Shown piece after piece: positions 1-58,227 of a stretch of DNA of 59,292 nucleotides. The notes beneath the pieces are model-generated. The model did no database searches. It saw only the letters and a list, made by a program, of their open reading frames with translations, and was not told where the DNA came from. Position 1 is the stretch's first letter, and every line of letters begins with the position of its first letter. This stretch comes from Caecitellus pseudoparvulus (lineage: Eukaryota; Protista; Bigyra: Bicosoecida): assembly GCA_965644315.1 (NCBI GenBank), contig CBFFRQ010000005.1:1-59292 (forward strand), given 5' to 3'. Made by a program: the position numbers and the translations under genes.

Positions 1-262
1 TAACCCTAACCCTAACCCTAACCCTAACCCTAACCCTAACTCTAACTCTAACCCTAACCCTAACCCTAACCCTAACCCTAACCCTAACCCTAACCCTAAC
101 CCTAACCCTAACCCTAACCCTAACCCTAACCCTAACCCTAACCCTAACCCTAACCCTAACCCTAACCCTAACCCTAACCCTAACCCTAACCCTAACCCTA
201 ACCCTAACCCTAACCCTAACCCTAACCCTAACCCTAACCCTAACCCTAACCCTAACCCTAAC
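1..262 (+). repeat. Terminal telomere, (CCCTAA)n / TTAGGG type
   Basis: Near-perfect CCCTAA array from base 1, with two CTCTAA variants near 40-51. The C-rich strand at the 5' end marks a left chromosome end. Confidence 0.98.
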
Positions 263-483
263 TTTCCAAATGTCAACCTAATCATAAGTTGTGCAGTGCT
301 AACAATGCCTAATCCAGGCGCTCATGCACCCAAGTGTGGTGTTGCACAGCGCTAGTGCAGTGCATTGGGTGCGCGGGTGAGCAGCAGTGCGATTTCCGGC
401 ACGCCACGCTCCCCACGCAGTGCTAAGTGCGGCTCCGGCTGGACGCTGCACCACTGCGTGCCCGAAACCATTGCTTCATCATC

Positions 484-2590
484 ATGTCATCCAAGGCCAG
501 CCAAGTCCTCGGCGTGCTCTTCGCGAGACCATGCGCCTGGAGCAGCGTGCTGTCGGGGCGGCCACGAACAGGCGTGCTGACCGGACATGTCACGCCGAGG
601 GGCAGCCCGGACTTTCCAGCTCGGCGGCATGGACATTGACTGCACGGATGGCCAAGATGCATCATTTTTCGTCCGCAAGTGGCTTGGCATCTTCGGAGAT
701 GAGCTGGAGGCCGAGTTTCCTGGAGCTGCTCCTGTGATGGTGCGCGCTAATTCCGCGCTGAAACAATCCGCACCAGGGCAGACCATTCTCCTTGTCACGC
801 TGCCGAGTGACGGTGAGAGGCCCCGCCATTGCCAAGTCCCTGCGCGTTGCTGCTGCTGTGCGAGAAGACTTCATCATCATGTTGAAGGGGGCGGCTCTGT
901 GGGCGTGGTGTACTCCAACACGCGGCAGTTCACGTCAGAGCGCGCCAGGGTCAGCGTGATCGCCCCTCCCTCTGTAGTGAAGGTTGCTCAAAAGATCTCT
1001 GAGGCAGCAACCAACATTGCCTGTGAGAGTGGGGATGTGTCCAAGATCTTGAAGCTTGTCCATGCCCATGTCACCAACACTCACTCCATCGCCAAGCGTG
1101 CTCCAAAGCCTGTCGGACACTCCGTCTCTCCAGAAGATGACGCCTCTGTCGACAAGCTGCCAAGCACACTGCCAAAGCCCCTTGCTGAAGGCGGTCCCAA
1201 GAAGAAGAAGACACGGAGGGGCAAACGCAAGCCATCGACAAAGAGCTCTCCTCCTCGGCGCTTTGCTGAACTGTTCAAGGAGGGCGTCGTGACTACTCGC
1301 CCCACAGCGCCCTCCCCTCCATCTGCACCCGCCGAGTCGTCAGGCCAAGCTGCTCCTTCCCCTGAACATGTCCCTCTTCCGTCCACCAGAGTCAAGCGCC
1401 CGACCTTCAGCAGATGGGACTCGCCCAGCCCACGCAAGAGACCTCCTCCCGTGTCCCCGACAGCTGCGGCACTATCGGGCAGCGGGGCCAGCCACCTCTT
1501 GCAAGTCCTGCAAACACGGCACCCACTACGCTGCTAAAACTTGCTGACTGCAGTCGCCGACCAGCACGGCTTGGACAGGCAAACCTTGACTTGGGTTCCC
1601 CCTTGCAGCAACTCCTCGCCTCTGCGCACGCGTTCCGCAATAAGGACCAACGACACTGTGTCCAGGCCTGCTTTGAAACAGCAGCAGGAGAGCCACTCTT
1701 CAATGACGATGACCTTGTCCTTCTTCAACACGCAGCCACCATCCAAGCGGCGCAGACATCCTTCTGTGCTGTGTTGAAGAAGAGCAGCGCGCGTCATCCT
1801 GGCACACCAGACTCGGAGGTCCATGCTGTCTGTGAAACAGAACCTTCCATGCCGACCACCGAGCAAGACAAGCTTGACCTCTTTCAATCGTTCCTGTACC
1901 GACATGCGCCTGATGATGCAGCACTCACCAGTGCCTGTCCACCTGTGCTCCTCCCTGGTCTTCATCTCTTGCTCACGCGTATCAACGAGGGCCATCGGGA
2001 ACTTGAAGGCGGCCAGTGTCTGGACACTGCCTGGCTGATGGTCAAGGCAGAGAAGAGATGACCTCCGAGGCAAAAGTCTTTGCTGGGGTGTACTTCGCGT
2101 TTGCTCTCAGCTTGGTTGACACTGGAGGTGTCTCCCACCTTCAGCTCATTGTCGTCAACGCTGAGAAGTCCACACTTGTACTGTGGAACCTGACGAACCC
2201 TTCAAGAGCACCAACATTCCAATCGACGGCTGCCTGAACACACTCGACACGATGGGCATTGAGTCTGTGTACCGTGTCACATCCTCCCCGCTGAGTGGCA
2301 AGCCGATTCCCTTCAAAGACAGAGTGCGGCTGGCCATGCTGTCCCTCCAGGTCTGACTTTCCCCCACTCCCGTTCGTAGCTGAGGACGAGACTGTCTACC
2401 CAAAGACTCTCATCACTGGCAAGACAACACGGGTGTACCTCCCTGTAGGCCGCACCACGCGCCAACAAGCAGCTGCCGATGAGAGAGCCAAGACGGTTGA
2501 CCCCATACTGTCACTCATCCCAACATCTGTACAAGTCGCCGACCAGATCAGTAGCGATGCACCGCCACACTGTCGGCCGCGGAAGACACA
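484..2590 (+). pseudogene. Element A ORF1-like N-terminal region (frameshifted)
   Basis: ORF pieces 427-639, 587-1537, 1414-2061, 2016-2237 and 2295-2756 are colinear with the intact 7917-9962 ORF (RRGAARTF, KKKKTRRGKR, CVQAC.ETAAGE, HLQLI, DFPPLP). Confidence 0.85.
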
Positions 2591-5500
2591 TGACACTCGC
2601 ACTTGCTGCTTGGAATGTGCACGGCTCCTGCGGCCAGTGTGTCCACGATGTCGTCACCTGTGTCCAGTCTGTGTGCAGTGCGTCGTCCATGTTGGCACTC
2701 TGTGTCACAGAGCCTGGGGGGCACGGCCTGCTCGACACGGAAGTCATGGGCCTTGAATGCTCCGCCCAAGCCCGCCTGATCGGCCTGTCGGGCGGAGTGA
2801 GGTTGCCTTGCTGCTTGATCGAAGACTCAATGGCTCAGTGATCCCGGGCCTCGACGTTGATGGTCGCTGCATAATTGCTTGCTCGATCCCTGCAAGCCCA
2901 CAACCCATCGCCATCATAGCCACGTACGTACCCAACTGGCACTCTTGGCAGCGAAAGAAGCCAGTCGCTGATCCGGACACAGCGCTTCCGTACCGGCAAG
3001 AGGTTTGGCGGCAGCTTGAGTCTGCTGTTCAACAGCTCCGCCTCACCCACATGATTGTCATCATGGGTGACTTGAACACTCATCCAGGTGACGAAGGGGT
3101 AGGCACGTGGGGAGCAGATCACTGGGAGAACCGGACCGGCATTCCCGAGCCCACTGAAGACATGCCTGCAGATGCAGCTCCTCTGCGAGCAAGGCCCACT
3201 GATCCCCAGCCGGACTTGGTGGCCTGCCAACGCACAGGTATGGTCGGGCTCTGGACCACATCCTGATGACTGAGGACCTCCACAGTATGTTGAGCAGACC
3301 ACTGCACATCACAACAACGTTCTCCAGCGGGACGAAAAAGAGTGCCGCTCGACTAGTCCTCAGTGACCATCATCTTGTTGCAGCAGAAGTCCGAGTGAAG
3401 CCTGCCAAGCGAGTGTGGACATCATCCAAGAGCCCCCATGTACAGGCGGTGCCACCCTGGTGGACCTCAGCGACAGAGGCTGGGCTGGCAGCGCAAGCGA
3501 TGTTCGCAGGATCCCTCAGCTCGCGGGCCACCGCGCTCCAGACAGGCAGCGCCGCCCCGAGCCTATCCTTTCTCAACGGTGCTATCGAAGCTGCGGCTAT
3601 GGACACACATCGCAAGGCCAAGACCCCACGTGACCCTCTGCCCCAGCTGAAGATGGACATCAAGGCGGCCAGCGGGCTCAAGAAGTCCATGACTGCACGC
3701 GTGTCCAAGCTGCGGAAGACCATTGCCAAGCTGCACCGGAAGCTCGCACTTGCCACCGGTCGGCATCCTGCAGCCAGACCACGCCCGTGCCATCCGAGAG
3801 GAATCTCCATGGCCACTGAAGAGCTCACGCCACGCTTCAATGCCGCAAGGACGCGATGCGGAAGTGCACGAGGCTTGTGAAGAAGAAGCGACATGTCACT
3901 CTGTCCAGGATCCGGAGCACGCTTGAGGGAACTCGCTGTCACGGATCCCTTCACTCGCGCCACCAACACATCAAGCGCCTGTCAGGTCGAGGTCGTCGAG
4001 CCCGTCGAGCTCCCATCAGGTCCGTGAAGTCCATGCAGGGAGTGCTCATCTCCTCCCCTGATCTGGTGAAGGAGGAGGTTGCCAAGCAGATGTCTGGCAT
4101 CCTGAGTCACAACAAGCCCAGGCCAACATCGCTGAAGTACGGGCTGGCAAGGTTCCTTCCCTCAGCCCAAGAGTCCTTCACCCCGCCAGTGACATGGCTT
4201 CCCTCCGAGAAGCAAGTCAAAGTCCTCATGGGATCACTCAGCTTGCATCGACACCCAGGCTCTGGCAAGTTCCAATCAGAGCACATCAAGTATGCTGGGG
4301 CCAGGCTTCCAAGACATCTACTCCCAAGCCGTCATCCAAGCGTTGCAACACGGCACCTGCCCGCCAGACTACCATGCAGGCATTGGGTCACTCATCCCCA
4401 AGAAGACGAGTGAAGCTGGGCGGCCTCGCACATACCGCTTGATTGTATGCCGCCCCCTCCTGCGAAGCTCTTCTTCTCAGTGGCCGCTGCATGCCTGGAG
4501 TCCTGGATGCAAACATGGGTGTCGAAGGAGCAGGCTGGCTTCACTGACACCGCAACACGCATGAGCACATCTTGGCTCTCCAAGAGGTGATCAGAGGGCC
4601 ACCTGCGACAGTCAACAGCGCCAGTGCAAGTCCTGGTACTCTTCGTGGACTTCCGGGGAGCATTCGACTCTGTGAGCCACGCAGCCATCACAGAGATCCT
4701 TGAGGCTGCCTCCTCCCTGCGCCACTCCTGGCCGTCATCAAGGAGTACATGTCCAAGGCGACGGTCTCCATCAACACGCGCCATGGTCTTTGTCGCCCCC
4801 TTCCTGTCAGCAATGGTGTCCCCCAAGGAGGAGCTCTGTCCCCCTCCTCTTCAAGGTTGCGATAGATGTGCTGTCGCAAAGGCTCCACGAGATGCCCCTC
4901 CAAGGCATCCAGGGAGTGGGCATCCCAACACCAGCAGGCCATGTCACCCACACCCTGTATGCAGACGACCTGGCCTGCATCGCAACGTCTGCCACGGCCT
5001 TGCACCGAATCTTCGTAGAGGTGAAGGCCATCGCTTGCCCGGGTTGGCCTTGCCATCAACCCGTCGAAGTCCGGGGTCACGATCCTTGCCAACTCCGTGC
5101 GAGGCAGCCGGACACCAGTCAGTGAAAGGAAGAAGTTGGTGTGGCGCTCGGCTGCCCTCAAAGCGGGCAGCATGCTGAAGGTTGGCACCAAGTCCATCCA
5201 ACGGGTGGCCGAGTACACCTACTTGGGTGTGCCGATGTCCGAACATCCTGCCAAGACCCGTGCACTTACCCTGCAACAAGCTGGGCTTGCTTGCATCCAA
5301 GCCGGAGTTCACTGCGGGCGCGCTGCTCAGTGCCACCTGGCTCGATGTGCAGCAGCGGCACCTGGTTGGGTATGCCACTGTCACGTCAGCCGCCGACTAC
5401 ATGCTGTCCACCCAAGCCAGCAGTTCCCTGCTTCCGCTGCGCGATGTTGACCGCGGCGTCGCCCTCGCCTTGGACAGGACCCAAGTCGGCTCGCAGAGTG

Positions 5501-7134
5501 CACTCATGCGCCCCCACAGCTACGCCAAGCTGGCTCTATGCGGAGTCCTGCCTGCCCACATCCGCTCCACGCAACTGCGGACTGGGATGTTTGTCAAGGC
5601 TCTCCGGATGCTGCACTCGGACACCCCTCTTGCCCGAGCTCTGTGCCTGACCATCCCGCAGGCCCTTGACCTTATGCCTGCTTCGATGTCGACGACCTTC
5701 ATCGTCGACACCATTGCTGATGGAGGTCGACTCCGGGCTGCCAGTGTCCCTGCTCCGTGGGCACTGCATGCCCTCTTGGACCTCTGGCTCATGGGCTGCA
5801 TGCCAGACCTTGCACAGCTTCGGCTTGCATGTGCACCTGGCTCTGAGCATGCTGCCACAGCCCTTGCCCAAGTCCTTGCCGGACTTAAGACCACCCCGGG
5901 CCTCCACAGGTCTGCGGTGGTTGGGGTGGCTGCCAGCGAGACGTCGTCCATGGCCGAACCCCGGCCTTCACGGCAGACACCCCCTGGGCCCTGCGTCGCC
6001 AAGTCCTCGCGTCGTATCTTCATGTAGCCCAGGCAGTGCCGAGTGCAGCTGCCCACTACACCACCGACAGCCGAATCCCCCAAGTGCAGAAGCCCAGGCC
6101 GCATCATCTTGGGCCTGGTGCGCAGCGCTTCGTGTGGCTACATCCACTGCCACACGGGGTGAACCCCCTCTTCTGGGTCTGTCCTGATGACAGGCCCACC
6201 AGAGTGATGGTCCATCACTTCCAGACCTTACAGCTTCTTCATGGGGGGGACAGTGCCACTCTGTACGAGTGCTGTCCGAGTTGCGGACTCAACACCGATG
6301 TACAGCTGCACGTGCACATCCTGCTGCACTGCACCCACCACGAACTCACCATGGCACGCCAACACACGATGACCAAGTTCAGAGAACTGGCCAACAGGTC
6401 AGCTGTGCCCGAGTCCCGCGGCGGGCCAAGTGCAGTGCCTGCCCATCCCCCCCAAGATCTGCCACGCCCTCCTTCGTGCCCCTGACCCAGAGCCTGCGAA
6501 GCCTGCGGGACCTCGAGGTCCTCCACAGGCTCCTGCTCTGCGGGCAGTGGCCTCACCGGTGGGGGCTGGCCGACGAAGAGCAGCTTGTCTCTATGAAAGA
6601 GGCGGCTGTCCTCTCCCACCCCCACCTCGTCCACCGTGCTGGTCCTTGCCGTGTCCGTGCCCCAGCTGTATGGCAAGACATCCTGCGCAGCGCGGTTGAG
6701 TTCACAGCAAAGGCGTGGCGGGTCACAGTCACTTACATGTTGCGTATGACCGATGCCCACCACCTTGCTGTCCAGAGGCATGCTGAGTACCTGTGGTGGG
6801 CAGTACATGGGCGCGGGGCGCCGCTGCCTGGCCGCACGCAGCCAGTGCGGTCAGCGGCCACGCGGCACACGCGCAGGCCCCGCACTCGCCGCAGGGCACG
6901 CACCTTTTCCCTGCCAAGGCTGGCCAAGTGCCGTCCACGGAGGGCAAGGTCCAGAGGACGCTGCAGCACTTCATGGGGCCTCAGCCAGCCCATGCAGACA
7001 CTGATGGTGAGGGGGAAGGGCCCGATGGTTCCCGTGAAGAGAGGCGAGGTAGTGGCGGAACGCAGGCGTGCGGGCGGGGAGTGGAACAGCCACGCTTGTG
7101 GCCGCGTCTACCCTCCACGAGTGTCCTGACGTGA
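2590..7134 (+). pseudogene. Element A pol: APE endonuclease, reverse transcriptase and zinc knuckle (frameshifted; 3' end approximate)
   Basis: Canonical APE and non-LTR RT motifs split across many frames. The C-terminal part is colinear with the element C ORF (AADY, PWA, LHP, HILL.C, LCGQWP). Confidence 0.88.
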
Positions 7135-7895
7135 TGAACCTGTGTGAAGCGTGGTGATAACCACGGTAGCCCGAAGCAGATGCCCAAGACCTTACCTTTT
7201 ACTTACTACATAGCCTGCGAGTAGCAGTGGAGTGAGCGGGAGCGTGCCTCGGGCCGCGGCGCGTGTGCAGCCGCAGTGCTGCACGGCCGCGGCCCGGATG
7301 GCGGCTGACGATGAAGCAAGCTCACTCACCACGAAACCAGGGCGTGACGGGTTGAAGAAGAAGGTCCTTTTCCTTTCTGTATCCCCCTTGATGCGCGCGA
7401 TGCGCTCTGTGGCGCGGGCGCGTGTGTGCGCACGGGTGCTGGTGTGCGCGATCGAATTCCGCACCACGCACCCGGCCGAGTTCCCGCGCAGAGGCGGAGC
7501 ACACACCTCATGAAGGGCGCAGAGAGGCCTATGAGGGCCACAGAGGAGGTGGGTGAGGAATTTGGATTATGATCTGTTGTCAAGACTGCGCGGATGCCTG
7601 GGTGTGCTCTGGTGTGCCCCAGGTGTCTGGCGCTGGCGGGCAAGGGATGAAGTGTAGCGGAGGAGGGCCAAGATGATGAATTGGAGCGGGCAGGGACCTG
7701 CCCTAGCAAGTGGCGGCAGATATAACGGGTGCAAGCCTGTGTTTGTTGCGAATCCGCGCCAAGCGGTAGCCGCTGTGGCGTCCTACATGTGCAGAGGTGC
7801 ATTGTGGGGCGCCCGTGTGACGCTCAAGCTGTACGGTGCCAAGCTGTGCCGAGGTGAAATGCATTGTGAGTTGCTAACCATTGAGTAGCTAACCC

Positions 7896-9962
7896 CAAGT
7901 CCTGGGGGTCCTCTTCGTGGAGGGGTGCCTGAAGCGCAAGCAAGTGCTCGGCCCCAGAACAGGTGTCTTCACTGACATGCCACGTCGGGGTGCCGCACGC
8001 ACCTTCGAGCTTGGAGGACCCCTGCCCAAGACTGATCATGATAGTTCATCTTCGGCACGGGACATGTGGCTCGAGGTCTATGGGGAAGCCGCCGAACGGC
8101 TGATCCCAGGGCTGAGTGCGGAATTCGGCAACGCCAATGCGGCCCTGCGCCAGGGACCCACCGGATCGCCAACCATCCTCGTCACGCTCGGAAGTGAGGG
8201 TGATTCACCAACAGTGGCACGTCAACTTCGCATTCTTGCTGCTCAAGAGGACGACTTCGCCATTCGAGTCGGCCAAGGTGGGTTCGTCGCCGTGGCCTAC
8301 ACCAACACCAAGCAGTTCGCATCGGCGAAGGCGAAAGTGAAGGTGAAGGCCCACCCCACCGCCATCCAAGTGGCCCACCAAGTGACCAAGGAAGCAACCG
8401 AAATCGCCTGCCAGTCAGGTGATGTTGCCAAGGTCATGTGCCTCGTTAGGTCCCACTTCGACCATGGCCCCGTGCCAGCCCAAGCCGTCCGTCCCAGTGT
8501 CAGACAATCCGTCCCCTCCGAGGGTGATGCACCTGTCGACACCAAGACACCATCGACCTGGACTGACACTCAGCTCGACAAGGCACCGAAGAAGAAGAAG
8601 ACCCGTCGAGGCAAGCGAGGAAAGGGCAAGTCAGCCGGACGATCCCTCACCTTCGAGGACGTCTTCATCAAGAACGTCCGGCCACCTGCACCTCGACCAA
8701 CCTCACCACCTGCCACCCAAGGCTCACCCAAAGATACCGTCACCACCCCTGTGGTGCATGCCATGTTGCCTTCATCAAGGGTGCAGCGGGGCGTCGACCG
8801 CAAGTGGCCGTCCCCCACCCCGTCGGGCGAGGCAAGCCCCGAGGTGCACCGGTATCGGCCGTCTGCAGCAGCAGCATGGGAGGTGATCACAAGGGTGGTG
8901 CCTCTTCATGACAGTGTGCGGACACCCGAGCACCTGGCCGAGTACCCCATCAAGCCTGGCCCTCTGGCCGACCTGCTGTCATCGACCCACGTGTACTCTA
9001 ACGTGGGGGGGCGGGCCTGTGTCCAGGCCTGTCTCGAGACGGCAGCAGGGGAGAGGGTCTTCGAGGCTGGGGACCTCCTCCTACTCCAGCATGCAGCCAC
9101 CATCAACGCTGCCCAGCTTGCCTTCAAGCACATGGTCAGGCAGCTGGAGGGGGTGGTCAGTGACTCGTCCAGCTCGGACATCATGGACGTCGGCCAGAAG
9201 CCACCCTCCCCCTTCCGCTCAGACGGGCAACGGGTGGCCGTCTTCCGCAACATGCTGCACCAGCACTCGCCGGATGACACCTTCCTGGCCCCAGGTACAC
9301 CACCAGTCCTGCTTCCCGGCCTGCACCTGCTCATCGACCGCATCAACCAAGGGTACCGTGCCCCAGCCGGGCATGATGACCTTGGCCAGGCCGGCGTCGA
9401 CCCCAGCCAGGTTGATGAAGAGGGTGACCAAGAGGGGCACCTCGACGGAGTGCTGTATGCCTTCGCACTTCGAGAGGTGTGGACCGACAACACGGCCCAT
9501 CTGCAGCTCATCCTCGTCGACCATGATCGAGGCAAGCTGGTGCTGTGGAACCCCGACATCCCTGACCTCCATGACGAGCTGCCCCTGCACAAGTGCATGA
9601 CCCGGCTGGCAGCCGAAGGCATCAACGTCTTGTACCGGATCTGGACCACACCCGAGGCGGGCAGTCCAGCACCCTTCCGGGACAGGCTTCGAGGGGCACT
9701 CCAGTCTCTCCGAGATGACTTCCCCCCCCTGCCTCACAAGGCCACCGACGGCACCGTGCACCCCCAGACCCTCATCGCTGGCAAGGGCACAAGGGTGGCC
9801 ATGCCTCATGGGCGGATGACCCGACAGCAGGCCGCCACCCTGGAGGCTGAGGTCAAGGACCCCCTCAAGCGGCTGGTGCCTGAAGACGGCGAGGGTCGCC
9901 TGCCCAAGGTCAAGGATGTGCCCCACATCTCGATCGGGCAGATGGGTGGACGCCTGATGTAA
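7896..9962 (+). CDS. Element B ORF1 protein (~690 codons; basic patch, Pro-rich linker, possible Cys-His-Asn protease-like domain)
   Basis: Open frame QVLGVLF...GGRLM*, with the first in-frame ATG at 7977. Homologous to A's ORF1 along its length. Confidence 0.8.
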   Translation, partial: QVLGVLFVEGCLKRKQVLGPRTGVFTDMPRRGAARTFELGGPLPKTDHDSSSSARDMWLEVYGEAAERLIPGLSAEFGNANAALRQGPTGSPTILVTLGSEGDSPTVARQLRILAAQEDDFAIRVGQGGFVAVAYTNTKQFASAKAKVKVKAHPTAIQVAHQVTKEATEIACQSGDVAKVMCLVRSHFDHGPVPAQAVRPSVRQSVPSEGDAPVDTKTPSTWTDTQLDKAPKKKKTRRGKRGKGKSAGRSLTFEDVFIKNVRPPAPRPTSPPATQGSPKDTVTTPVVHAMLPSSRVQRGVDRKWPSPTPSGEASPEVHRYRPSAAAAWEVITRVVPLHDSVRTPEHLAEYPIKPGPLADLLSSTHVYSNVGGRACVQACLETAAGERVFEAGDLLLLQHAATINAAQLAFKHMVRQLEGVVSDSSSSDIMDVGQKPPSPFRSDGQRVAVFRNMLHQHSPDDTFLAPGTPPVLLPGLHLLIDRINQGYRAPAGHDDLGQAGVDPSQVDEEGDQEGHLDGVLYAFALREVWTDNTAHLQLILVDHDRGKLVLWNPDIPDLHDELPLHKCMTRLAAEGINVLYRIWTTPEAGSPAPFRDRLRGALQSLRDDFPPLPHKATDGTVHPQTLIAGKGTRVAMPHGRMTRQQAATLEAEVKDPLKRLVPEDGEGRLPKVKDVPHISIGQMGGRLM

Positions 9963-10577
9963 GTCACCTGTGGGGGCATACTCCCTGTGCCACACATGAC
10001 TGAAGCTTTGTGTCGCGACCGACGCACATAGCTGACATCGGACATTGGAAAGTCCAACCCAACCTCACCATCACCAACCCAACATCGATACCAACACATC
10101 AGGACTCGGCTCAGTGGAAGGGGAAGGCACTTGCAGCAAGATCTGTGAGGCCGCCCCCAAACCTGAGCCGAAGGGACAGCCGGGCTGGGTCGTGTGCTTG
10201 CATCTCAGCAACACCCAGTCCGTGTCGAGTCCATATCCTCCAGCCCACACCGCCACCCAAGCCAAGCAAGTCGGGTCTCCACCCCTGGACATCGGACCGA
10301 GACGGACGAGACTGGACTGGACGGACAAGACAAGAGTGGACCGAGACCTGGACCTACACCTCAAGACCATCCCACCGGGGCGGGCGCTGAAGCGCCAAGA
10401 CAGACGGCGACTTATACAACGGACACGAGTCTGTGCTAGTCGCAAAGCCGTGCAAGCGGTGCCGTCGTGGTGTCTGTGTCACTGCATTCTGTTGTGGCGC
10501 AGGTGGCACCACATGTCCAAGCCCAAGCTGTACCATGATGTAGCCTGCATGGAGGCAATCTGCAATGCATTGAGTAG
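7896..10577 (+). mobile_element. Element B: ORF1-only (RT-less) relative of element A, slightly 5'-truncated
   Basis: Begins at CAAGTCCTG, corresponding to codon 7 of A's ORF1. One intact ORF is followed by ~600 nt without APE/RT motifs, then the family 3' end CAAGCTGTAC..TGCAATGCATTGAGTAG-CTAACCC. Confidence 0.85.
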
Positions 10578-10999
10578 CTAACCCTAACCCTAACCCTAAC
10601 CCTAACCCTAACCCTAACCCTAACCCTAACCCTAACCCTAACCCTAACCCTAACCCTAACCCTAACCCTAACCCTAACCCTAACCCTAACCCTAACCCTA
10701 ACCCTAACCCTAACCCTAACCCTAACCCTAACCCTAACCCTAACCCTAACCCTAACCCTAACCCTAACCCTAACCCTAACCCTAACCCTAACCCTAACCC
10801 TAACCCTAACCCTAACCTAACCCTAACCCTAACCCTAACCCTAACCCTAACCCTAACCCTAACCCTAACCCTAACCCTAACCCTAACCCTAACCCTAACC
10901 CTAACCCTAACCCTAACCCTAACCCTAACCCTAACCCTAACCCTAACCCTAACCCTAACCCTAACCCTAACCCTAACCCTAACCCTAACCCTAACCTAA
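10578..10999 (+). repeat. Interstitial telomeric tract (CCCTAA)n, ~420 bp
   Basis: Same orientation as the terminal telomere, with a single CCTAA slip near 10811-10820 and another at the proximal end. Confidence 0.97.
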
Positions 11000-11640
11000 A
11001 GAGCTCCAGTGAAAATCCTGTGACGGGGCGCGCGGAATTTGGCAGGGTGAACACGCGGGCGCGCGGGGAAACGTCGCAGGCGGGGCGCACCGGTCCTCAG
11101 GGCCTTGATTGATGAATCAGCTGGATGTTCTGTGAAGAGGGGGAGGTGTTCTTGGTGTTCTTGGTCGCGGGGGGCGTTGTTCCGGCGGTGCGCGCTGCTA
11201 CCACCTGCGTGGTGCAGTGCAACACCGTCGTGAAACGCCACCCCGAAGGCGGCCACTGCGGCTCAGGGCAGCGCGCAGTGGCCCCAGGCACGTGTGCAGT
11301 GCCTGGCGAGGGCCAGGAGATGCGGGGGGTTTCTGAATTATGAAGCGAAGTGTGGACTGGGACGAAGTAGGAGTGGGCCCGGCCCTCTCTGGCTCAGCCG
11401 ACTGAGCCGAGAGGGCGCGGGCGGGGCAGTTCGACACGTATGGGCGGGCGCGGGCGCGCCCTAGCAAGCGGCGGCTCATACAACGGACGTATGTCCGTGA
11501 TGGCTGCAGACCCACGAGAGTGGGAGCCGCTGTGGCGCTCCTGCTGTGCCTAGTGCACAGCAGCGTGCGCCACACGTGACGCCCAAGCTGTACCACGTGC
11601 AAGCGTGAAGGCAAGTTGCAATGCATTGAATTGGCTAACC
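11000..11640 (+). mobile_element. Element D: 3'-UTR-only fragment of a related retroelement
   Basis: Shares motifs with A's 3' UTR: CCCTAGCAAG.GGCGGC...ATAYAACGG, AGCCGCTGTGGCG, GTGACGC.CAAGCTGTAC and AATGCATTG..GCTAACC. Confidence 0.75.
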
Positions 11641-11740
11641 CTGCTGTGCCTAGTGCACAGCAGCGTGCGCCACACGTGACGCCCAAGCTGTACCACGTGC
11701 AAGCGTGAAGGCAAGTTGCAATGCATTGAATTGGCTAACC
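11541..11740 (+). repeat. Exact 100-bp tandem duplication of element D's 3' terminus
   Basis: 11541-11640 is identical to 11641-11740. Confidence 0.97.
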
Positions 11741-11747
11741 CTAACCC

Positions 11748-11837
11748 TGCAGAGGTGCATTGTGGGGCGCCCGTGTGACGCTCAAGCTGTACGGTGCCAA
11801 GCTGTGCCGAGGTGAAATGCATTGTGAGTTGCTAACC
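11748..11837 (+). repeat. Exact 90-bp copy of element A's 3' terminus
   Basis: Identical to 7790-7879 and flanked on both sides by short CTAACC(C) runs. Confidence 0.97.
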
Positions 11838-11843
11838 CTAACC

Positions 11844-14273
11844 GTCTGCATCGACACGGAACACGGCATGACCGAGGCCATTCACGCGACCAGTGGCGTA
11901 GCGCAAGGAAGCGTCCTCTCGCCCCTCCTATTCAAGATCGCGGTCGACCTGGTGTCCCGTGCGCTCTCCTTGAACCACATTCCCGGGGAGGGAACGGGGG
12001 AAAAACCGACACTGGGGGTCAAGCTACTGCATTCAAAGGGGGACCCAGTCCACACTGGACCCCGATTCAGCCATGCGCTGTACGCAGACGACCTGGGACT
12101 CGTCGTAGACAGCGCGGACGCCGTGATCCGTGCGATCACCATCGTCAGGCGGGTCGGGGCGCTGCTTGGGCTCAGAGTCAACGCCTCCAAGTCGGCCATC
12201 CTGATCATGCGACCAACACCACGACTTGCGTATCGCATGAGCCGACTCCATGTGCAGATAGTCAGCGCCAAGAAACGCCTTGCTGCGGAGTCACAGGCGC
12301 TAACAGTCGACGGAAAGCGGATCCCTCTCGTGGACGAATACGAGTACTTAGGAACACCGCTGCAAGCCAAGCTGTTCATACAGCATAAAGTAGCTCGTCG
12401 ACATGCTGCAACCACCTTGAGCATGGCTGGGCACTCTTCTGTGGCGATCTCTGCGGCCGAATGGCTCGCCCCGTCGGCAGCGCACCGCCTTTTGAGGACC
12501 TCAGTGGTCGCAGCAGCCGACTACACGCTGGCCATCACCGGCAAGCACTCGCTCATGCCCGACCGCATGTGCGACAATGCCGTTGGCAGTGTTCTGGACA
12601 AATCCGTGTTCGGTTTTCAGCTCCATCCGATGCGCGTCCAACACGGCGCGGTCCTTGCAGCGGCTGGTATTCCTCTGACGCACATGCGCACGATGCGGAG
12701 TCGCATTGGTTTCATAGTCCGCACACTCAAGCAGGCTGTGGTGGATTCGCCTGCTTTCAGAATCCTGATGGTGAGCGTGTGGCAGGGCCGAACGATGGTC
12801 GCGGACGTCCCGGACGAGAGGGTCCCTTCGGCCCTACTTTTGGAAGACGTAGCGGCATCAAAGCACACCTTTTACGGTACAGGCACTCCGTGGGCGGTCA
12901 GACCCCTACTTGAGTTGCGCCTGTTGGGGTACCACGAAGGTGTGTTCGGCGTTCTGGCCATGGCCGCGAGGTGGCACGATTTGAGCGGAAATCGGGACAC
13001 CACGGCCCTACACGAGGAGATGCGATCTCTCCAAAAGGCCTTAAAGCTGCCCATGAACACGGCCCAAAACGGCCCGAAGTTGTTCGTCGCAACAAGTGTT
13101 CCTGTGGCCTCTGCGAGGTTCGACAGGTCGGTTGACTTCCCGGCCACTTTCACGTTGAGGCAGCGTTTGGACCTCCTGGAGTCGTACTTGTTCATTGCAC
13201 GAACGCAAAGAACAGACATGTACCGGGAGACCATGTTCCTACCTGCTGAGTACCCGGGCCACTCACCTCGGGGAGAAATAGGCGACAAAAGAGTGAATCC
13301 GACGCTCTCGCCGAGGTCTCACCATTTGGACATCCGAGCGCGAACACACGCGGAACTGCATCCGATTCCGAGTGTTCCCTGTAGTGCTTGGACCGCCTGT
13401 CATCCTGACAGAAGTTGGTTGCCGAAGGTGTTCATGCTGCAGACACAGCAGCTCCTGCATCCGGGTGCACTCCTGACGCCGTATATCGCATGTCCTCTGT
13501 GTTTGGACCCCGAAATACGCGATGCGGAGTTCATTTTAGACCACATTCTGCTGGACTGCCCCTCAGTGTCTCTAGAACGTCTAGCGTTCTTCCGAGAGGC
13601 TGAGCAGAACATGCAGGACTGTGACGAAGCGGCAAAGTCAACCACTGTGCCGAGGCGGCCGACGGCCGAGGCCCTCCGGCACCCACCCCTGAGATACGTC
13701 ACCATTCCAGAAAGCCTGCACACAGCGGTGCAGGCTGGCTGTCAACTGGACACTGGAACACGTATCTCATGCCAGAACACCCGGGCGTTGCTGAAGCGGC
13801 TCGCCTTGTGTGGTCAGTGGCCCACGGGAGCACCCGAGTGTGCGGACTGGGATCACGCAACTTGTGCTGCCCTCACGGCGCCACACATGGAACGGTTGCG
13901 TGTTCCAGTCCGAAACTCGACCCATCTACTGGACCAAGACCCAGTGAAAGCCGCTGAAGCACTGGAGGCATTTGCTGGGCCCTTGCGGCAAAAGTTGCTC
14001 CCGAATTCTGGGGGTGCCGCTGACGGCAAAAGTTTCTACTGGCCCCACGAGGTGGTCGCCGCACCTCCCGGATGGATGAAAGCCCTGAAAACCTGCATCC
14101 GGTACTGTGGGGCCGTGTTTGATCACGTGGTAGAAGCCCAACTTCAGGGTGCAGGCGTGGAACGCGGGCAGCCCGCCGCGGACCTCGCGCGGCGAGCCCG
14201 CTACACGGCCGCCACGCCAAGCCACCTCGCTCCCGGGCGAGGTGGCGTGGCAGAGGAGCAAGAAAGTGAGTGA
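11844..14273 (+). CDS. Element C partial pol: C-terminal half of RT and zinc knuckle
   Basis: SGVAQGSVLSPLLF, LYADD (12081-12092), GLRVNASKS, YEYLG, CPLC-x13-H-x4-C. No native start. Confidence 0.9.
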   Translation, partial: VCIDTEHGMTEAIHATSGVAQGSVLSPLLFKIAVDLVSRALSLNHIPGEGTGEKPTLGVKLLHSKGDPVHTGPRFSHALYADDLGLVVDSADAVIRAITIVRRVGALLGLRVNASKSAILIMRPTPRLAYRMSRLHVQIVSAKKRLAAESQALTVDGKRIPLVDEYEYLGTPLQAKLFIQHKVARRHAATTLSMAGHSSVAISAAEWLAPSAAHRLLRTSVVAAADYTLAITGKHSLMPDRMCDNAVGSVLDKSVFGFQLHPMRVQHGAVLAAAGIPLTHMRTMRSRIGFIVRTLKQAVVDSPAFRILMVSVWQGRTMVADVPDERVPSALLLEDVAASKHTFYGTGTPWAVRPLLELRLLGYHEGVFGVLAMAARWHDLSGNRDTTALHEEMRSLQKALKLPMNTAQNGPKLFVATSVPVASARFDRSVDFPATFTLRQRLDLLESYLFIARTQRTDMYRETMFLPAEYPGHSPRGEIGDKRVNPTLSPRSHHLDIRARTHAELHPIPSVPCSAWTACHPDRSWLPKVFMLQTQQLLHPGALLTPYIACPLCLDPEIRDAEFILDHILLDCPSVSLERLAFFREAEQNMQDCDEAAKSTTVPRRPTAEALRHPPLRYVTIPESLHTAVQAGCQLDTGTRISCQNTRALLKRLALCGQWPTGAPECADWDHATCAALTAPHMERLRVPVRNSTHLLDQDPVKAAEALEAFAGPLRQKLLPNSGGAADGKSFYWPHEVVAAPPGWMKALKTCIRYCGAVFDHVVEAQLQGAGVERGQPAADLARRARYTAATPSHLAPGRGGVAEEQESE

Positions 14274-14645
14274 TAAAAGCTTGCTTTGGGTTGATAGTGC
14301 ATTTCAAGATGTTATTCTGAAGTTCCCGGTGTCGTAACGCGCGGCGGGGTCGTTTTGGGTCGCGGGGTGGCGAGGTGTGCGCGGGGTCGCCGCGGCGCTC
14401 CCAACACGCCAAGGCCGAAACCCGCGCCCAACTCGCCCAACAGGCGCCGAACGCCTGAAGGACGACGAAGAACATTAAAGTACCATGTTTTGAAAAGAAC
14501 AAGCTTACTTCACATGGTGACTCACCATGCTCTGTGCAAGATATGTGTACTGAGCAAGCGAGCGCCGCAGCCCGCTTCTTTCGAGGAGCAAGTGTGAGGT
14601 GAGTGTGGTTGAAAACAAGAGGTTGCAATGCATTGAACTTCCTAA
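11844..14645 (+). mobile_element. Element C: 5'-truncated non-LTR retrotransposon, diverged relative of A
   Basis: Starts mid-RT directly after CTAACCCTAACC. It stays in frame to 14273, and the 3' UTR ends TTGCAATGCATTGAACTTCCTAA. Confidence 0.9.
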
Positions 14646-14656
14646 GCTACAATGCA

Positions 14657-17600
14657 TTATTCTTTACCTTCCAAGCCTTCTTTGCGCATACTCTGCGCTC
14701 GAGCAGAGCGTGTGGTACTACCTTTTTGTTTCCTGGAGTGGTTGACAGGGGGCATTCTTTCGCAAGGGTGCTGTGGCAACCCTTCAGATGAATCCACAAT
14801 ACTCTTCCGTGCCATCCGAGATCGAGTACCAATGAGGATGTCACTTCTCTGCGGTGCTGAAGTAATCCTCATTGATGAGCGCTTTGCCGAGTTCACCATG
14901 CTTTTCCAAGCGCGAGGAGCTTCTCTTGTTTCACCGTCTCTACCTGGACAACTGGAGCTGAGTTTGCCGCTCACCTGCCCATTGATTGCACTTGACTGAC
15001 GAATCTGTGTTTGTTCAAGGGATTGAGAGCTTTCTGAGCGACGCCAGGCCGCGAAACCAAAGCTGTGCGATCTGGAAAACGATGCACTTCGTACTGCCTT
15101 CAGCCGGGTAGTCATCACAGACTTCGCTACAGCTACTTTTTCTGCGTTTTCTGATATCCAAAACTGAACTAAAAGTACCATGCATGTCCCGACAAAGAAA
15201 AGGTTAGTTGACCACATCACTGCTGTCACAGCCACACTGACACGCGATCCAGCCCTATCTGCAAGCGAAACTGAACTCTGGTTTGCAACCAACAACAAGC
15301 CAAGAAGAAGCGTCAAGACAACAAGCCAGAGGCTCGCAGATGCTAAGCTATTCAACAGCTTTGTGTGATATGGCCGTGTACTCAGCTGTAAAGTCAGGGC
15401 TGCGAGAGCAACTATTGCTCCTGTGGTTGCTTGCGAAGCGATACCTGCTGGCTGAAGCACAACCGAAACGAACGCAAGCAGAACTTTCTGTCCTTGAACC
15501 ACAGACTCCCATATTGGTATGTCACTTCGGTAGTCTGTGTACGCGAAACCAAGGGTGCGCCTCGCTGCAACATGTGCAGGATGCTTTTTGTTCACCAGAA
15601 CACTTCTTGCACCAGCCAGAAGTGCCGCCCCAAAAGCCGGAATACCAATAGCATACCCAATAAACCCTGGAATGCCGACACCGAACTGCAGTCGCTGAAC
15701 TGCCGGGTCATCACAGCTGACGCTGATATCTCCTGCGAGGACGCTTCGCCCCGCGATGGTGGCGCACGTCATCATATCCAAAGATGCACGAGTCATGGAC
15801 AAGTGAAGCATAAACCCTGAGGTAAGAAGTGCGACAACCAACTGGCTCGTGTGCTTGTGCTGGACAGCCTTGAGCGTTGCTCTTTCAAGGAATCCTCTGC
15901 AACCATTCCTTGTCGATCGAAATCTTGCTGCTGATAGTTGTGACCCTTCACGCAGTGGGTTTGTCGTTGTGCGCAAATCTTCACTCTGTTCACTTACGTT
16001 GGCACTTAGCCCTGTCTTGCGCATGAAACGCACAAGGGGAATAACAAGCAAGAAAGTCACCACAAGTCCAAGCGCAATGACAACTGGGATAAGAAGCATG
16101 TAAGCTCGTGATAACAGAAAGCGAGAGGTTGTCCCATCAGAAAAGTCTTGCGGGGGCAGTAGGCAGTCAGTTGAAATTGCCTCGCTGCCAGCAGACATGA
16201 GAAAGTCTGCTGACACAAACAACCCACTCAGTTCTGAAGGCCAGACAAAAGGAAAGCTAGAAGCAATACTCAGAAATTGTGCATGGCCCAGTAGTAGCTT
16301 GAGAACCGTCAGATTTACTTGACTCTTGTGGGCTGCCGCATTCAGAGTGCTCCATATCAGCCCAGAAAGCATTGCAGTTCCAACGATACCGATTCCAACG
16401 AGAGCGGAAACTTGGGCAGCCGCAGTTCCACAGGCTGTGCAGACTGTACCTCCTCTGCTCCCAGTATTTACCCAGCCATTTGCACACGTTGCGCAAAGTG
16501 GGCCTGTGTAGCCTGTGGCACACCCGAGAACTGTCGCGTTCCCAACCGGAGATCCGAAGGGCTCCCCAGTAGATGCGTGGCGATTCATCCAGTCGCTGAG
16601 GGCACTTGCTGCAGTACATGCTGGTGACGGCGTTGAGTTCGCATAAACAAAGCAGGCCTTGTGTCCCATGCTGGCCATTCCGGGAAGCACTTGTCTTGCA
16701 ACTACGCTGTGCAAAGGTGTGGGTGGCATGCTTCGCGGACACGCAAGGATACCACCAGGGCAAGGCAGGTAAATGGGGATGTCTTCTTCCAAGCCACCCA
16801 CTGCAGATGATGGGGGAACACGATAGTGCCCACCTTGTGGCACCACGGCCTCATAAGGAGCTCCGTTGCACTGCGCGTTTGGTGGGCAAGTGCGGCAAAG
16901 AACGCGCTGGGTTGCAGAAAGCACAGCTCCTCGGTCAACGGGTTCCCCCCCAAGAAGCGGCAGCAGCAGAGGCTGGGTTGCCAAGTACTGCGTCGGTCGA
17001 CAACGTGGAAGAATCGGACCCGCAGGCACACTTGGATTTCCAACAGTGCTTCCACCTTTCGCTTGCTCAGATGTTCCTGTGGCAGCTGCCACTGCCACCC
17101 AAACAGGGCCTGCTGGAATCGCAACACGCGCTTGCAGTAGCTCTGCTTGGTGCTCTCTATGCAGTTGCTCTGCGCTTGTGTACAACTTAGATCCCAGTCC
17201 CCAGGCAGCCTCCACGGCGAGGGAGGGAGTCAGCACAAAGCAGGGCAGCGATGAGTTGGTTGAAACTTCCTCCGCTGCGCTTGCTTCTATGAACACTGCC
17301 CCAGGATGGGACAGTGCCTCGAACGCATTCATATCAGCGGATAGAGGGTTGGAGCTGACGACAATCCACCAGCCCCCAATACCATACAACCTTGACGCGG
17401 CATCTGCTTGCCAGCTCCAGCGCACATAACCAAACCCAGGGTCCACGTCCGGGTCTGAGCGCAGCAAACATGCACCAATGGGTGACGTTTTGGATGCCTC
17501 GGGCGATTGTTCATACTTAAAAGAAGCCACGCTCGTTGAAACAAACCCTGATGTCATGTAAAGAGTGAATGCAAACGGTTCTGGCAAATTGGACAGAATG

Positions 17601-56644: not shown

Positions 56645-56846
56645 ACCAGTATGACGATGTGGGTAGTTGTGCGATCTTTGAAATGAATTGCGGTTGTTTG
56701 CGTGGGGCCCGGCTGTGCATGATGCGTTGGGGTCACAGCCAGGCAGGGTTGAGCGCTTGCAGCGATGTACAAGCGCGCACCACGTGCAGGGTGCATTGAT
56801 CCAGACCTGCCCAGCAAGCCAAGCGTGTGGTGGTGCATGTGAAGGT

Positions 56847-56862
56847 GGTGTTGAGGAACACC
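56847..56862 (-). promoter_or_regulatory. Histone 3' stem-loop (H4)
   Basis: CCAAC-GGTGTT-CCTC-AACACC-ACC. Confidence 0.85.
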
Positions 56863-56940
56863 GTTGGGGTGGTGGGGCGGCGCAGTGCCTGAGCACACAC
56901 GCCGCCTGGCAGGCAAGCCCTGCCAAGGGAAGCAGTCCGC

Positions 56941-57976: not shown

Positions 57977-58024
57977 ATGCTGCGCAGCCTTGCGGCTCAG
58001 GCTTTGCCTGCCCACCACCCCCAC

Positions 58025-58040
58025 GGTGTTACTCAACACC
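58025..58040 (+). promoter_or_regulatory. Histone 3' stem-loop (H3)
   Basis: CCCAC-GGTGTT-ACTC-AACACC-ACCA. Confidence 0.85.
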
Positions 58041-58227
58041 ACCAACAACTCTTGCACCATGGCTTGCACTGCATCTTGTGGTCTGTGAGCGGGCAAGCGA
58101 TGGACACATGCATTTCAAGCGTCACTGAATCAAACTGCTGCAGGGCCATGTCAATCTGAGCCTGTGTGAAAGCCAAAGCATGTAACACACTGGCTCTTGA
58201 GACTTGCGGGTTGCACGTCTTGGGAAT

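Follow-up and report, generated by a model that had tools for sequence, protein, structure and literature searches.

A terminal stack of candidate telomere-specific LINE retrotransposons at a chromosome end of Caecitellus pseudoparvulus

A seven-piece terminal retroelement stack was confirmed at one chromosome end of the marine stramenopile protist Caecitellus pseudoparvulus (contig CBFFRQ010000005.1). The window, i.e. the whole stretch of DNA that was analysed, comprises 59,292 nt, and its features are collected in Table 1. The stack probably represents a single lineage of telomere-specific non-LTR retrotransposons that coexists with telomerase and is added to chromosome ends.

Table 1. Features of the terminal stack and its immediate context in the window.
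Feature	Position	Strand	Remarks
Terminal telomere tract, (CCCTAA)n	1–262	+	Two CTAACT variant units at 41–52
Element A, full-length 7.6 kb autonomous-family copy	263–7879	+	N-terminal RRM-like and papain-like region, APE, RT, C-terminal CCHC region
B tag, terminal 15–16 nt of B	7880–7894	+	Joins A 3′ end and truncated B directly
Element B, non-autonomous partner, 5′-truncated by ~245 nt	7895–10583	+	Full length ~2.93 kb
B open frame	7917–9962	+	681 aa here; 694 aa in full-length copies
Interstitial telomere tract, ~415 nt of (CCCTAA)n	10584–11001	+	Ends ...CCTAAAG at the truncated 5′ end of D
Element D, 3′ 0.64 kb, untranslated tail	11002–11640	+	Family ~7.75 kb, autonomous; full copy L019:604-8357
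D tag, exact repeat of the terminal 100 nt of D	11641–11740	+	Begins within the 3′ hairpin
A tag, terminal 90 nt of A	11748–11837	+	100% identical to 7790–7879
Element C, 5′-truncated, distant sister family	11844–14645	+	Second half of RT, C-terminal CCHC region, 3′ UTR
First host gene, 2901-aa ORF, RCC1-like and IPT/TIG domains	14657–23362	−	Context, outside the elements

Because the window begins with 262 nt of (CCCTAA)n, it represents a left chromosome end; the telomere pattern was found 105 times in the window, with 0 expected by chance. The seven retroelement pieces, all on the + strand, fill positions 263–14645 and make up the outermost 14.6 kb of the chromosome. No host DNA was found between them, as the preliminary description of this sequence had stated, and the whole span matches other chromosome ends of the genome. 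Element A is joined to the terminal tract at CCCTAAC/TTTCCAAATG (slashes mark joints) and ends in ...ATGCATTGTGAGTTGCTAACC. The B tag, given earlier as 17 nt, is present with a length of 15–16 nt. Seven nucleotides (CTAACCC) lie between the D tag and the A tag, and six (CTAACC) between the A tag and element C, whose 3′ end, CCTAA, abuts unique DNA. From 14646 onward the DNA is unique, and the host gene ends in a stop codon (14657–14659) located 11 nt past the 3′ end of C. Terminal direct repeats (LTRs) are absent in a self-comparison of the window, and 5′ truncation is frequent (B, C and D copies, and the 3′ tags).

The order of the pieces is that given by the assembly, and the order, or the stack itself, could in principle have arisen by misassembly, if repeats near the end of the contig were collapsed or joined chimerically. 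Such an origin would fit the A copy, in which private indels and substitutions are oddly balanced at 1:1, and B, whose sole variant is a homopolymer length. However, the same architecture is found at 20 other contig starts and in an independent metagenome contig of a 3%-diverged strain, which reads telomere, B, 11 nt of telomere and then the 5′ end of a D-like element. Moreover, the joint between C and the host gene is supported by a 10-kb marine-metagenome contig, which spans the host gene into the 3′ end of C by ~23 nt, and by a 111-nt contig that covers 14616–14726 with zero mismatches. An assembly artefact is thus highly improbable.

Element matches were found on 68 of the 215 contigs, on the + strand near contig starts and on the − strand at high coordinates; the inspected set consists of the window and 20 contig starts, and the placement of the − strand copies at right contig ends is an assumption. 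(CCCTAA)n is present at 19 of the 20 contig starts examined. In the resulting 21 readable chromosome ends, all 31 element 3′ ends are on the + strand and read ATGCATT..CTAACC, in agreement with the earlier claim of a head-to-tail arrangement with 3′ ends toward the centromere. The orientation and end position of the copies, a check that the preliminary description had proposed, gave the same picture, with 1.57 Mb of co-oriented pairwise matches among the 21 ends and 0 bp in the opposite orientation. As far as could be seen, the elements are confined almost only to chromosome ends, with their 5′ ends toward the terminus. A few old internal fragments of the C family (70–86% identical) occur in both orientations (contig C30 at 254 kb, contig C89 at 61 and 73 kb, and contig C91), and a 62-nt piece of this family, 98% identical, is located on contig C18 at 155 kb.

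A search of the genome for TERT, also proposed earlier, identified an open frame with Telomerase_RBD (79 bits) and RVT_1 domains; the TERT is intact as judged by this frame, and the host is predicted to retain telomerase. The terminal TTAGGG tracts are 0.26–5.7 kb long across the ends read (median 1432 nt). The organism is found widely in marine metagenomes.

The A copy in the window is split into 12 frames of at least 150 aa by 36 private indel columns and carries many private 1-nt indels. The domain calls rest on natural uninterrupted ORFs of other copies (L009, L013 and L019) and not on joined A frames. The autonomous families A, D, E and F, and the more distant C, encode a single polyprotein with an RRM-like domain, a basic patch, a papain-like region, an APE endonuclease, a reverse transcriptase (RT) and a CCHC motif. 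In L013, a natural ORF that runs uninterrupted for at least 2058 aa carries both RVT_1 (E 6.7e-29) and Exo_endo_phos (E 1.7e-11); a second RVT_1 match has an E value of 9.6e-32. Among solved structures, the RT is nearest to R2Bm (E 5e-21) and L1 ORF2p (E 1e-14). Six sequences, from four families and two outside relatives, all carry the same APE catalytic residues (E, Y, D-N, D and S-D-H). A sequence search of solved structures with two of the APE domains matched only ExoIII (E 0.013) and sphingomyelinase (E 0.002), and no LINE endonuclease. No REL endonuclease was matched in the C-terminal region, where the CCHC motif is located; APE and RVT_1 were the only such domains found. These domain matches assign the elements to the non-LTR (LINE) type by their predicted RT, with a predicted APE-type endonuclease. 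A poly(A) or A-run 3′ tail was not found, the 3′ ends being CTAACC, which equals a single repeat of the telomeric C-strand (CCTAA for C). Target-site duplications are undefinable within the repeats.

When the RTs were placed in a tree together with the 65 best outside RTs, a single clade (SH-aLRT 99) united A, D, E, C and their metagenomic relatives, which indicates one divergent LINE lineage; its neighbours are unnamed metagenomic RTs in this tree, which was built without labelled references of the named LINE clades. The A, B and D proteins are 41–49% identical, and the first ~95 nt of these elements are more than 90% identical. A word-filtered protein search gave two weak matches for the APE-RT part and one match for B. 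A 3′ hairpin recurs at a matching position in six families (A, B, D, a second D copy, X and E); folded one sequence at a time, it has weak z-scores (+0.4 to −2.3), and because the stems also fail to align, covariation is not claimed.

Element B, the most abundant element, with at least 40 near-identical copies in the genome, contains no endonuclease or RT. Its first ~95 nt and its 3′ module are held in common with A and D, and its protein shows 41% identity with the N-terminal ~720 aa of the polyprotein of A. The earlier proposal of an autonomous APE-RT family with an RT-less partner is therefore sound, with RVT_1 and Exo_endo_phos in A-type elements and only the N-terminal protein in B. The label 'ORF1-only' given to the partner is apt as far as this N-terminal protein is kept, but the autonomous elements have one long ORF, of which B encodes the first third. 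B is not a recent deletion derivative of A, a candidate origin that was rejected because B is only 40–42% identical to every autonomous family.

The B protein contains an RRM-like domain (residues 26–129), a basic patch (KKKTRRGKR) and a papain-like region (residues 361–590), in which C372, H528 and N545 are invariant in six sequences. The best structural match of the papain-like region (model pLDDT 60–80) is Josephin-2, with a Z score of 7.2 and an rmsd of 3.7 over 131 residues; other structural matches to residues 361–590 are mostly papain-like proteases. A Foldseek search gave E values above 0.01, and this region has no Pfam match. The model of the RRM-like domain (blocks 31–130, pLDDT 71–92) ranks the RRM of human L1 ORF1p first in both searches, at weak scores (Z 5.4 over 91/99 residues; Foldseek E 0.07).

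The B copy in the window lacks the 5′ UTR, the ATG and six codons, and in the remainder matches at least 25 other copies at 100% identity. The sole variant among the B copies is a G7/G6 homopolymer difference, and a frameshifted B variant was accordingly rejected as a real subfamily; the 100% identity may in part be a polishing artefact. An environmental copy that is 97% identical differs from B by 40 synonymous and 20 non-synonymous changes (dN/dS 0.165), which shows that the B ORF is under purifying selection and functional.

The extreme similarity of the copies would also be expected if the arrays were subtelomeric repeats that now undergo little or no retrotransposition and have moved between chromosome ends by recombination or break-induced replication, and two ends (L005 and L007, on contigs C18 and C30) indeed have a common B-to-D junction and larger blocks. 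However, about 20 distinct 3′ junctions are present among 24 B copies, and these are independent insertions. Truncation points at the 5′ ends, tags and tract lengths also vary among chromosome ends, the natural long ORFs are intact, and the signature of selection on B is likewise at odds with passive spread. We therefore consider this explanation very unlikely.

The preliminary description had placed telomeric sequence of 5 to ~420 nt at every 3′ junction. CTAACC is indeed present, but most of this sequence belongs to the elements, whose own 3′ termini are CTAACC (CCTAA for C). Beyond the terminal hexamer of each element, the telomeric repeat at the seven 3′ junctions (A, B tag, B, D, D tag, A tag and C) amounts to 0, 0–1, ~415, 0–2, 7, 6 and 0 nt, so that a single substantial tract is found within the stack. 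Repeats and elements are interleaved, as implied by the suggestion that RT additions alternate with telomerase capping, but strict alternation is at most partly supported, since the remaining joints are direct or separated by 6–7 nt. With only one tract of ~415 nt, the seven pieces may derive from two or three compound events with RT template jumps, which explains the stack as well as seven events. The tags of 15, 100 and 90 nt have the appearance of copies that were aborted before the RT jumped to another template; tags of 9–100 nt are found at several ends.

Across the ends read, the median telomeric run behind an element 3′ end measures 10 nt, and the run is no longer than 30 nt at 24 of the 31 junctions; proximal tracts of 200–900 nt were found at four junctions. 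Elements lie directly on unique DNA in the window and in L002, L004, L006, L010 and L018, and in L003 a cadherin-repeat ORF is open into a 31-nt telomere tract. Repeat-free joints include B to B (GCTAAC/TTTCC), A to B tag to B, and D to D tag. The 3′ junction is mostly in register CTAACC/CTAACC, and three 3′ registers were observed (CC/CTAACC, CC/TAACCC and CC/CCTAACC), in addition to some joints without repeats; all six repeat phases are seen at the 5′ junctions. The registers differ by ±1 nt, a variation compatible with end-priming and nick models alike.

These junctions bear on a site-specific mode of insertion like that of TRAS and SART, in which the APE nicks the G-strand of duplex TTAGGG at a preferred site and primes reverse transcription there, such that nothing is added to the chromosome end itself; the stack would grow because each insertion enters the repeats distal to the previous one. 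Nicks in duplex repeats would yield the identical polarity, and the prevailing 3′ register, the four long proximal tracts, and the presence of telomerase with long distal tracts, as in Bombyx, are all consistent with this mode. Moreover, DNA nicking by the elements is the simplest explanation for an APE that is intact, with catalytic residues invariant across families and outside relatives. However, Drosophila TART and TAHRE also retain an APE domain. In addition, given a terminal median of 1.4 kb, the excess of short proximal runs has a binomial P of ~1e-30 under uniform nicking, several elements sit on unique DNA or on truncated bodies with only their own hexamer between, and the three 3′ registers and the six 5′ phases may also speak against one preferred site. 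Since the proximal runs are far shorter than the terminal tracts and some elements are placed on unique DNA, priming on eroded ends is favoured over endonuclease-made nicks, and site-specific insertion is rather unlikely, with appreciable weight nonetheless. The short telomeric runs could also be read-through RNA tails or products of RT slippage, and not remnants of short telomeres.

In the end-addition mechanism that we favour, the 3′ CUAACC of the element RNA would pair with the 3′ end of the G-strand (...GGTTAG), and the RT would then copy the RNA and extend the chromosome G-strand, as a result of which all copies would have their 3′ ends toward the centromere. The primer would usually be a telomere end eroded to few repeats or none, and not a random nick in a long tract. 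An RT that aborts, or reaches the 5′ end of the RNA, would often jump to the 3′ end of another element RNA, giving rise to direct head-to-tail joints and short 3′ tags; otherwise, telomerase would extend the new end, full-length copies being joined in the fixed register CCCTAAC/TTTCC. B would be copied in trans by the RT of an autonomous family, as HeT-A is in Drosophila. In the simplest history of this chromosome end, C, the A tag, the D tag and D would have been added onto a non-telomeric end beside the host gene, after which telomerase may have added ~415 nt. The truncated B, the B tag and the full-length A would have followed, before telomerase added the present 262 nt.

The stack resembles the Drosophila HeT-A/TART/TAHRE arrays, which are likewise terminal and head to tail with 3′ ends toward the centromere. 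In both systems the most abundant element (HeT-A; here B) has no RT, encodes a selected protein and shares its termini with autonomous elements (TAHRE; here A and D), autonomous members possess an APE domain, and elements are found directly on non-telomeric DNA, in Drosophila through the healing of terminal deletions. The Drosophila-like system proposed earlier is thus upheld in its polarity and its RT-less partner. The host differs from Drosophila in telomerase: Drosophila has none, whereas TERT is intact here and kilobase TTAGGG tracts are present. Additionally, the Drosophila elements are joined via poly(A) and have a separate Gag ORF, in contrast to the CTAACC terminus and the single polyprotein with RRM-like and papain-like domains found here, and the RT lineage is, as far as could be told, unrelated to the Jockey-clade RTs of Drosophila. 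The R1-clade elements TRAS1 and SART1 of Bombyx are also APE-type LINEs in telomeric repeats, with telomerase repeats distal to them. However, each of these Bombyx elements has two ORFs, is poly(A)-tailed and enters at one fixed TTAGG nucleotide via a sequence-specific APE, whereas the present elements have a single ORF, a telomeric-hexamer terminus, a variable register, proximal tracts of mostly 30 nt or less, and some joints directly on unique DNA. The Penelope-like Athena, Coprina and Terminons share with the present elements a 3′ terminus complementary to the G-overhang, through which the RNA can anneal to the end, as well as coexistence with telomerase and co-orientation at ends, but contain a PLE-type RT without endonuclease in place of a LINE-type RT with a conserved APE.

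MoTeR1 and MoTeR2 of Magnaporthe are an autonomous and a non-autonomous element with common termini; the MoTeR2 protein is not known to be related to that of MoTeR1, unlike the B protein, whose homologue is the N-terminal third of the polyprotein of the autonomous elements. The MoTeRs and the Fusarium FoTeRs are located within TTAGGG telomeres with the 5′ end facing the chromosome terminus, a polarity also found here, and have a C-terminal REL endonuclease of the CRE/SLACS group (PMC12857005). The present elements differ from both in carrying an APE and no REL match. Zepp of Chlorella and GilM/GilT of Giardia carry tails of the poly(A) type and differ from the present elements in their domain sets, neither comes from a stramenopile, and we know of no coding non-autonomous partner reported for them. 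Both are algal or protist LINEs stacked head to tail at chromosome ends, in terminal piles like the one described here (PMC10088271). Retrotransposons specialised for telomeres have been described from insects, Giardia, Chlorella, rotifers, the anole lizard and a few fungi (PMC10088271, PMC12857005). No telomere-specific retrotransposon system in stramenopiles was found in the literature, in line with the novelty claimed in the preliminary description.

The lineage joins features that are otherwise split among systems: an APE-type LINE with a predicted telomeric-unit RNA terminus, as in the endonuclease-less Penelope-like elements, a selected HeT-A-like coding partner, apparent healing of non-telomeric ends, and coexistence with active telomerase. 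A further-reaching reading, possible but held only tentatively, is that LINE RTs routinely extend bare 3′ ends, with no repeats left or broken within genes, in a telomerase-positive protist, that the single-unit RNA terminus is perhaps copied reiteratively, and that the elements serve as a back-up system for end healing, with B as a selected HeT-A-like specialist that supplies an RNA-binding/protease protein. If true, the lineage would represent an extant intermediate state that links ordinary LINEs with Drosophila-type retrotransposon telomeres and with telomerase. The organism is apparently in culture and could be used to test directly the sharing of chromosome ends between retrotransposons and telomerase, and to ask if the endonuclease is required for end-priming, a question that bears on the origin of Drosophila-type telomeres and perhaps of telomerase.

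The window opens with 262 nt of (CCCTAA)n and therefore represents the left end of a chromosome; its contig belongs to a 30.6-Mb assembly of 215 contigs. The pieces behind this tract were mapped by comparing the window with itself and with other ends and by searching for motifs, where A, C, D, E and F denote autonomous families, B a partner element without APE and RT, and a tag a short 3'-terminal fragment. The preliminary description of the stack was correct, apart from small adjustments in size. The first unique DNA after the stack is at position 14646. Two variant units (CTAACT) are found within the terminal telomere tract at 41–52, and host DNA far from the stack contains a 51-nt inverted repeat (86% identical, 56844–56894 and 57995–58043) with arms ~1.1 kb apart.

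Pieces of the element stack in the window and internal C-family fragments on other contigs
Feature	Contig	Positions	Strand	Remark
A	C5	263-7879	+	full length
B tag	C5	7880-7894	+	last 15-16 nt of B
B	C5	7895-10583	+	5'-truncated
Telomere tract	C5	10584-11001	+	about 415 nt
D	C5	11002-11640	+	3' fragment
D tag	C5	11641-11740	+	exact repeat of the last 100 nt of D
CTAACCC	C5	11741-11747	+	7 nt
A tag	C5	11748-11837	+	identical to 7790-7879
CTAACC	C5	11838-11843	+	6 nt
C	C5	11844-14645	+	5'-truncated
C-family fragment	C30	253726-254341	-	
C-family fragment	C89	60634-61285	+	
C-family fragment	C89	73170-73821	-	
C-family fragment	C18	155122-155183	+	62 nt, 98% identical
C-family fragment	C91	66555-66773	+	
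C-family fragment	C78	433663-433780	-	

Matches to A, B, C and D occur on 68 contigs; those near contig starts are on the + strand, those at high coordinates on the - strand. Nineteen of 20 contig starts fetched from the same genome (L-numbered below) begin with (CCCTAA)n of 0.35–5.7 kb followed by elements, and one opens within an A copy. Pairwise matches among these 20 ends and the window comprise 1.57 Mb co-oriented and none inverted, with all 31 of the conserved 3' modules on the + strand. The 3' flanks of B differ at about 20 of 24 copies, with a shared junction only between L005 and L007, and the copies thus represent separate insertions. The internal exceptions are 3'-end fragments of the C family, mostly old (70–86% identical) apart from the C18 piece. 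The pieces on C30, C89 and C18, which occur in both orientations, are internal to contigs that are known to be long; the fragments could mark former ends or be genuine internal insertions. At L008:9673-10000, ~9.7 kb from the end of contig C31, an interstitial telomere tract of 213 nt is directly followed by sequence that on visual inspection is strongly AT-rich, compared to ~60% GC in the genome; this sequence may be of foreign origin, either virus-like or organellar, and have been captured where a chromosome formerly ended.

The autonomous elements encode one polyprotein, rather than ORF1 plus ORF2. This reading is based on the frames of natural copies as they stand. An E copy (L013:3824-10000) contains a single uninterrupted frame of at least 2058 aa, with ~680 N-terminal residues, APE (679–934) and RT (1280–1550) in that order, and a break found in several A copies between RT motifs, within a C-run, is bridged in L006. 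The A copy of the window displays APE and RT signatures and is cut into 12 frames of at least 150 aa, while other copies, 98–99% identical to it, have much longer frames. It carries 39 private substitutions and 36 private indel columns (11 in homopolymers of at least 3 nt), and these indels may reflect decay or a poor consensus at the contig end. The D piece is the 3' tail of a ~7.75 kb family whose full copy (L019:604-8357) has APE and RT. The C piece contains the second half of RT and a C-terminal region with a C-x2-C...H-x4-C motif, and shares 28% identity with E.

Among 1.8 billion representatives, searched exhaustively without a profile, only two real relatives were found beyond near-identical fragments, P0005 (2150 aa, coral metagenome, 33% identical) and P0006 (3724 aa, 34% identical); the remaining matches are generic LINE RT of at most 168 bits. 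P0006 is a relative of the C sub-lineage on an 18.8-kb Logan metagenome contig from another organism. This contig starts with (CCCTAA)3, and the P0006 ORF lies 7.6 kb in and points away from the end, as in the window. A DDE_1-like transposase ORF is located between the two. In an RT phylogeny, the families of this genome form one clade with P0005 and P0006 (SH-aLRT 99), within which A, D and E constitute one group (99) and C joins P0005 and P0006 (97) in another; the neighbours of the clade are unnamed metagenomic RTs. The APE catalytic residues are invariant across the families and the outside relatives.

The partner B has a full length of ~2.93 kb, and in the window copy ~245 nt are missing, the ATG among them. 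Identity is 100% or 99.96% for at least 40 copies. The sole variant, a G7/G6 run at B position 1362 by which the ORF would be shortened to 573 aa, is present in 7 of 24 occurrences of the site in the loci read (L004, L007, L008, L011, L015 and L019) and is probably a homopolymer error of sequencing or assembly. The B protein (694 aa) aligns end to end with the polyproteins of A, D, E and F upstream of APE at 40–42% identity, which rules out a recent deletion of A and indicates an old lineage of its own. Among 5.8 billion proteins it has a single match, an ORF with 97% identity from a metagenome contig in which telomere repeats are followed by full-length B, then by 11 nt of telomere and the 5' end of a D-like element. 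Between the two genes there are 40 synonymous and 20 non-synonymous differences (dN/dS 0.165); the B protein is maintained by selection. The structure prediction is of modest quality, and the folds that it suggests are probable. Residues 26–129 have a probable RRM-like fold (blocks 31–130 of the domain model, pLDDT 71–92); two structure searches both rank the RRM of human L1 ORF1p first, but with weak scores (Z 5.4 and Foldseek E 0.07). Residues 361–590 (pLDDT 60–80) match papain-like cysteine proteases, the best being Josephin-2 (Z 7.2), and most other structure matches share this fold; the six sequences aligned all retain C372, which sits at the N-terminus of a helix, as well as H528 and N545.

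The 3' module of every family except C has the form ...AATGCATT..(3-9 nt)..CTAACC, whereas C ends in ...ATGCATTGAACTTCCTAA. A long hairpin, different in sequence, is found ~65–110 nt upstream in six families, and both the D tag and the A tag begin within it. The first ~95 nt of A, B and D are more than 90% identical, although their proteins share only 41–49% identity, and contain degenerate telomere-like units (CCTAATC, GCTAACA). The distal telomere joint of full-length copies is CCCTAAC|TTTCC in about 17 of 22, with extra As in the remainder. The 3' CUAACC of the element RNA would pair with the 3' end of the G-strand (...GGTTAG), which RT would then extend, and the polarity of the elements would follow from this. 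The three 3' junction registers (CC|CTAACC, CC|TAACCC and CC|CCTAACC) fit primers ending in ...TTAGG or ...TTAGGG with 1–2 nt of overlap.

The primer could be a nick made by APE in the telomeric duplex, as the conserved APE would suggest. However, the telomeric runs that follow the 31 element 3' ends examined are short, with a median length of 10 nt (at most 30 nt in 24 of 31), compared to 1432 nt for terminal tracts; under uniform nicking, runs of 30 nt or less are expected at 0.03 per event (binomial P about 1e-30), and we consider a nick rather unlikely. Additionally, elements in the window (C), L002, L004, L006, L010 and L018 directly adjoin unique DNA, the only repeat at the joint being that of their own terminus. 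A 1755-aa cadherin-repeat ORF (L003:4735-9999, minus strand) stays open as it enters a telomere tract of 31 nt, as the healing of a break within a gene would produce, and a 508-aa ORF without a Pfam match (L002:6570-8093, minus strand) is open up to the telomere/element junction. Telomeric sequence supplies both stop codons, and terminal breaks, healed afterwards, seem to have truncated the two genes. The short runs, the joints to unique DNA and the L003 ORF favour priming on ends that had lost most or all repeats.

Direct element joints and 3' tags of 9–100 nt without intervening repeats are best read as template jumps of RT within one event; template jumping is known for non-LTR RTs. The varied telomere phases at 5' junctions of truncated copies fit de novo addition by telomerase, and also microhomology joining. 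The search for TERT proposed earlier identified one frame in the genome, with Telomerase_RBD (79 bits) and RVT_1.

The seven alternations of RT and telomerase proposed initially would give way to two compound events and two rounds of telomerase, in view of the direct joints and of repeats of only 0–7 nt. C would have been added first, to a non-telomeric end 11 nt beyond the host stop codon. The A tag, D tag and D fragment would have come next, separated by 0–7 nt of repeats, and after them the telomere tract of about 415 nt. Truncated B, the B tag and full-length A, directly joined, would have followed, and the present 262-nt telomere would be last. The host ORF (2901 aa, RCC1-like and IPT/TIG domains) has its stop codon at 14657–14659 on the minus strand, and the 11–14 nt between C and this stop include CAATGCATT, which is the core of the 3' box of the elements. 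Since the stop falls within a stretch resembling the box, the gene may itself be truncated, its present stop perhaps derived from an old element tag rather than the natural end. A 10-kb contig from a 2019 marine metagenome extends from the host gene to about 23 nt within the 3' end of C, and a 111-nt contig (organism A) spans 14616–14726 with no mismatch; both are below or close to the 31-nt threshold, and lend weak support to a real joint between C and host DNA.

Telomere-associated retrotransposons are listed for insects, Giardia, Chlorella, Pyricularia, anole lizard and rotifers (PMC10088271), to which Fusarium has been added (PMC12857005). No report from stramenopiles was found in the literature searched, in agreement with the preliminary description. 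The closest proteins to a DBP10-type helicase encoded in the window are from stramenopiles (oomycetes, about 45–47%; Cafeteria, 57% over part of the length), with no close named relative found by protein comparison. Sequence of the region 10997–14900, which covers elements and the host gene end, occurs in at least nine metagenome studies (2015–2025) of marine and aquaculture settings; this organism, or closely related strains that carry these elements, is widespread.
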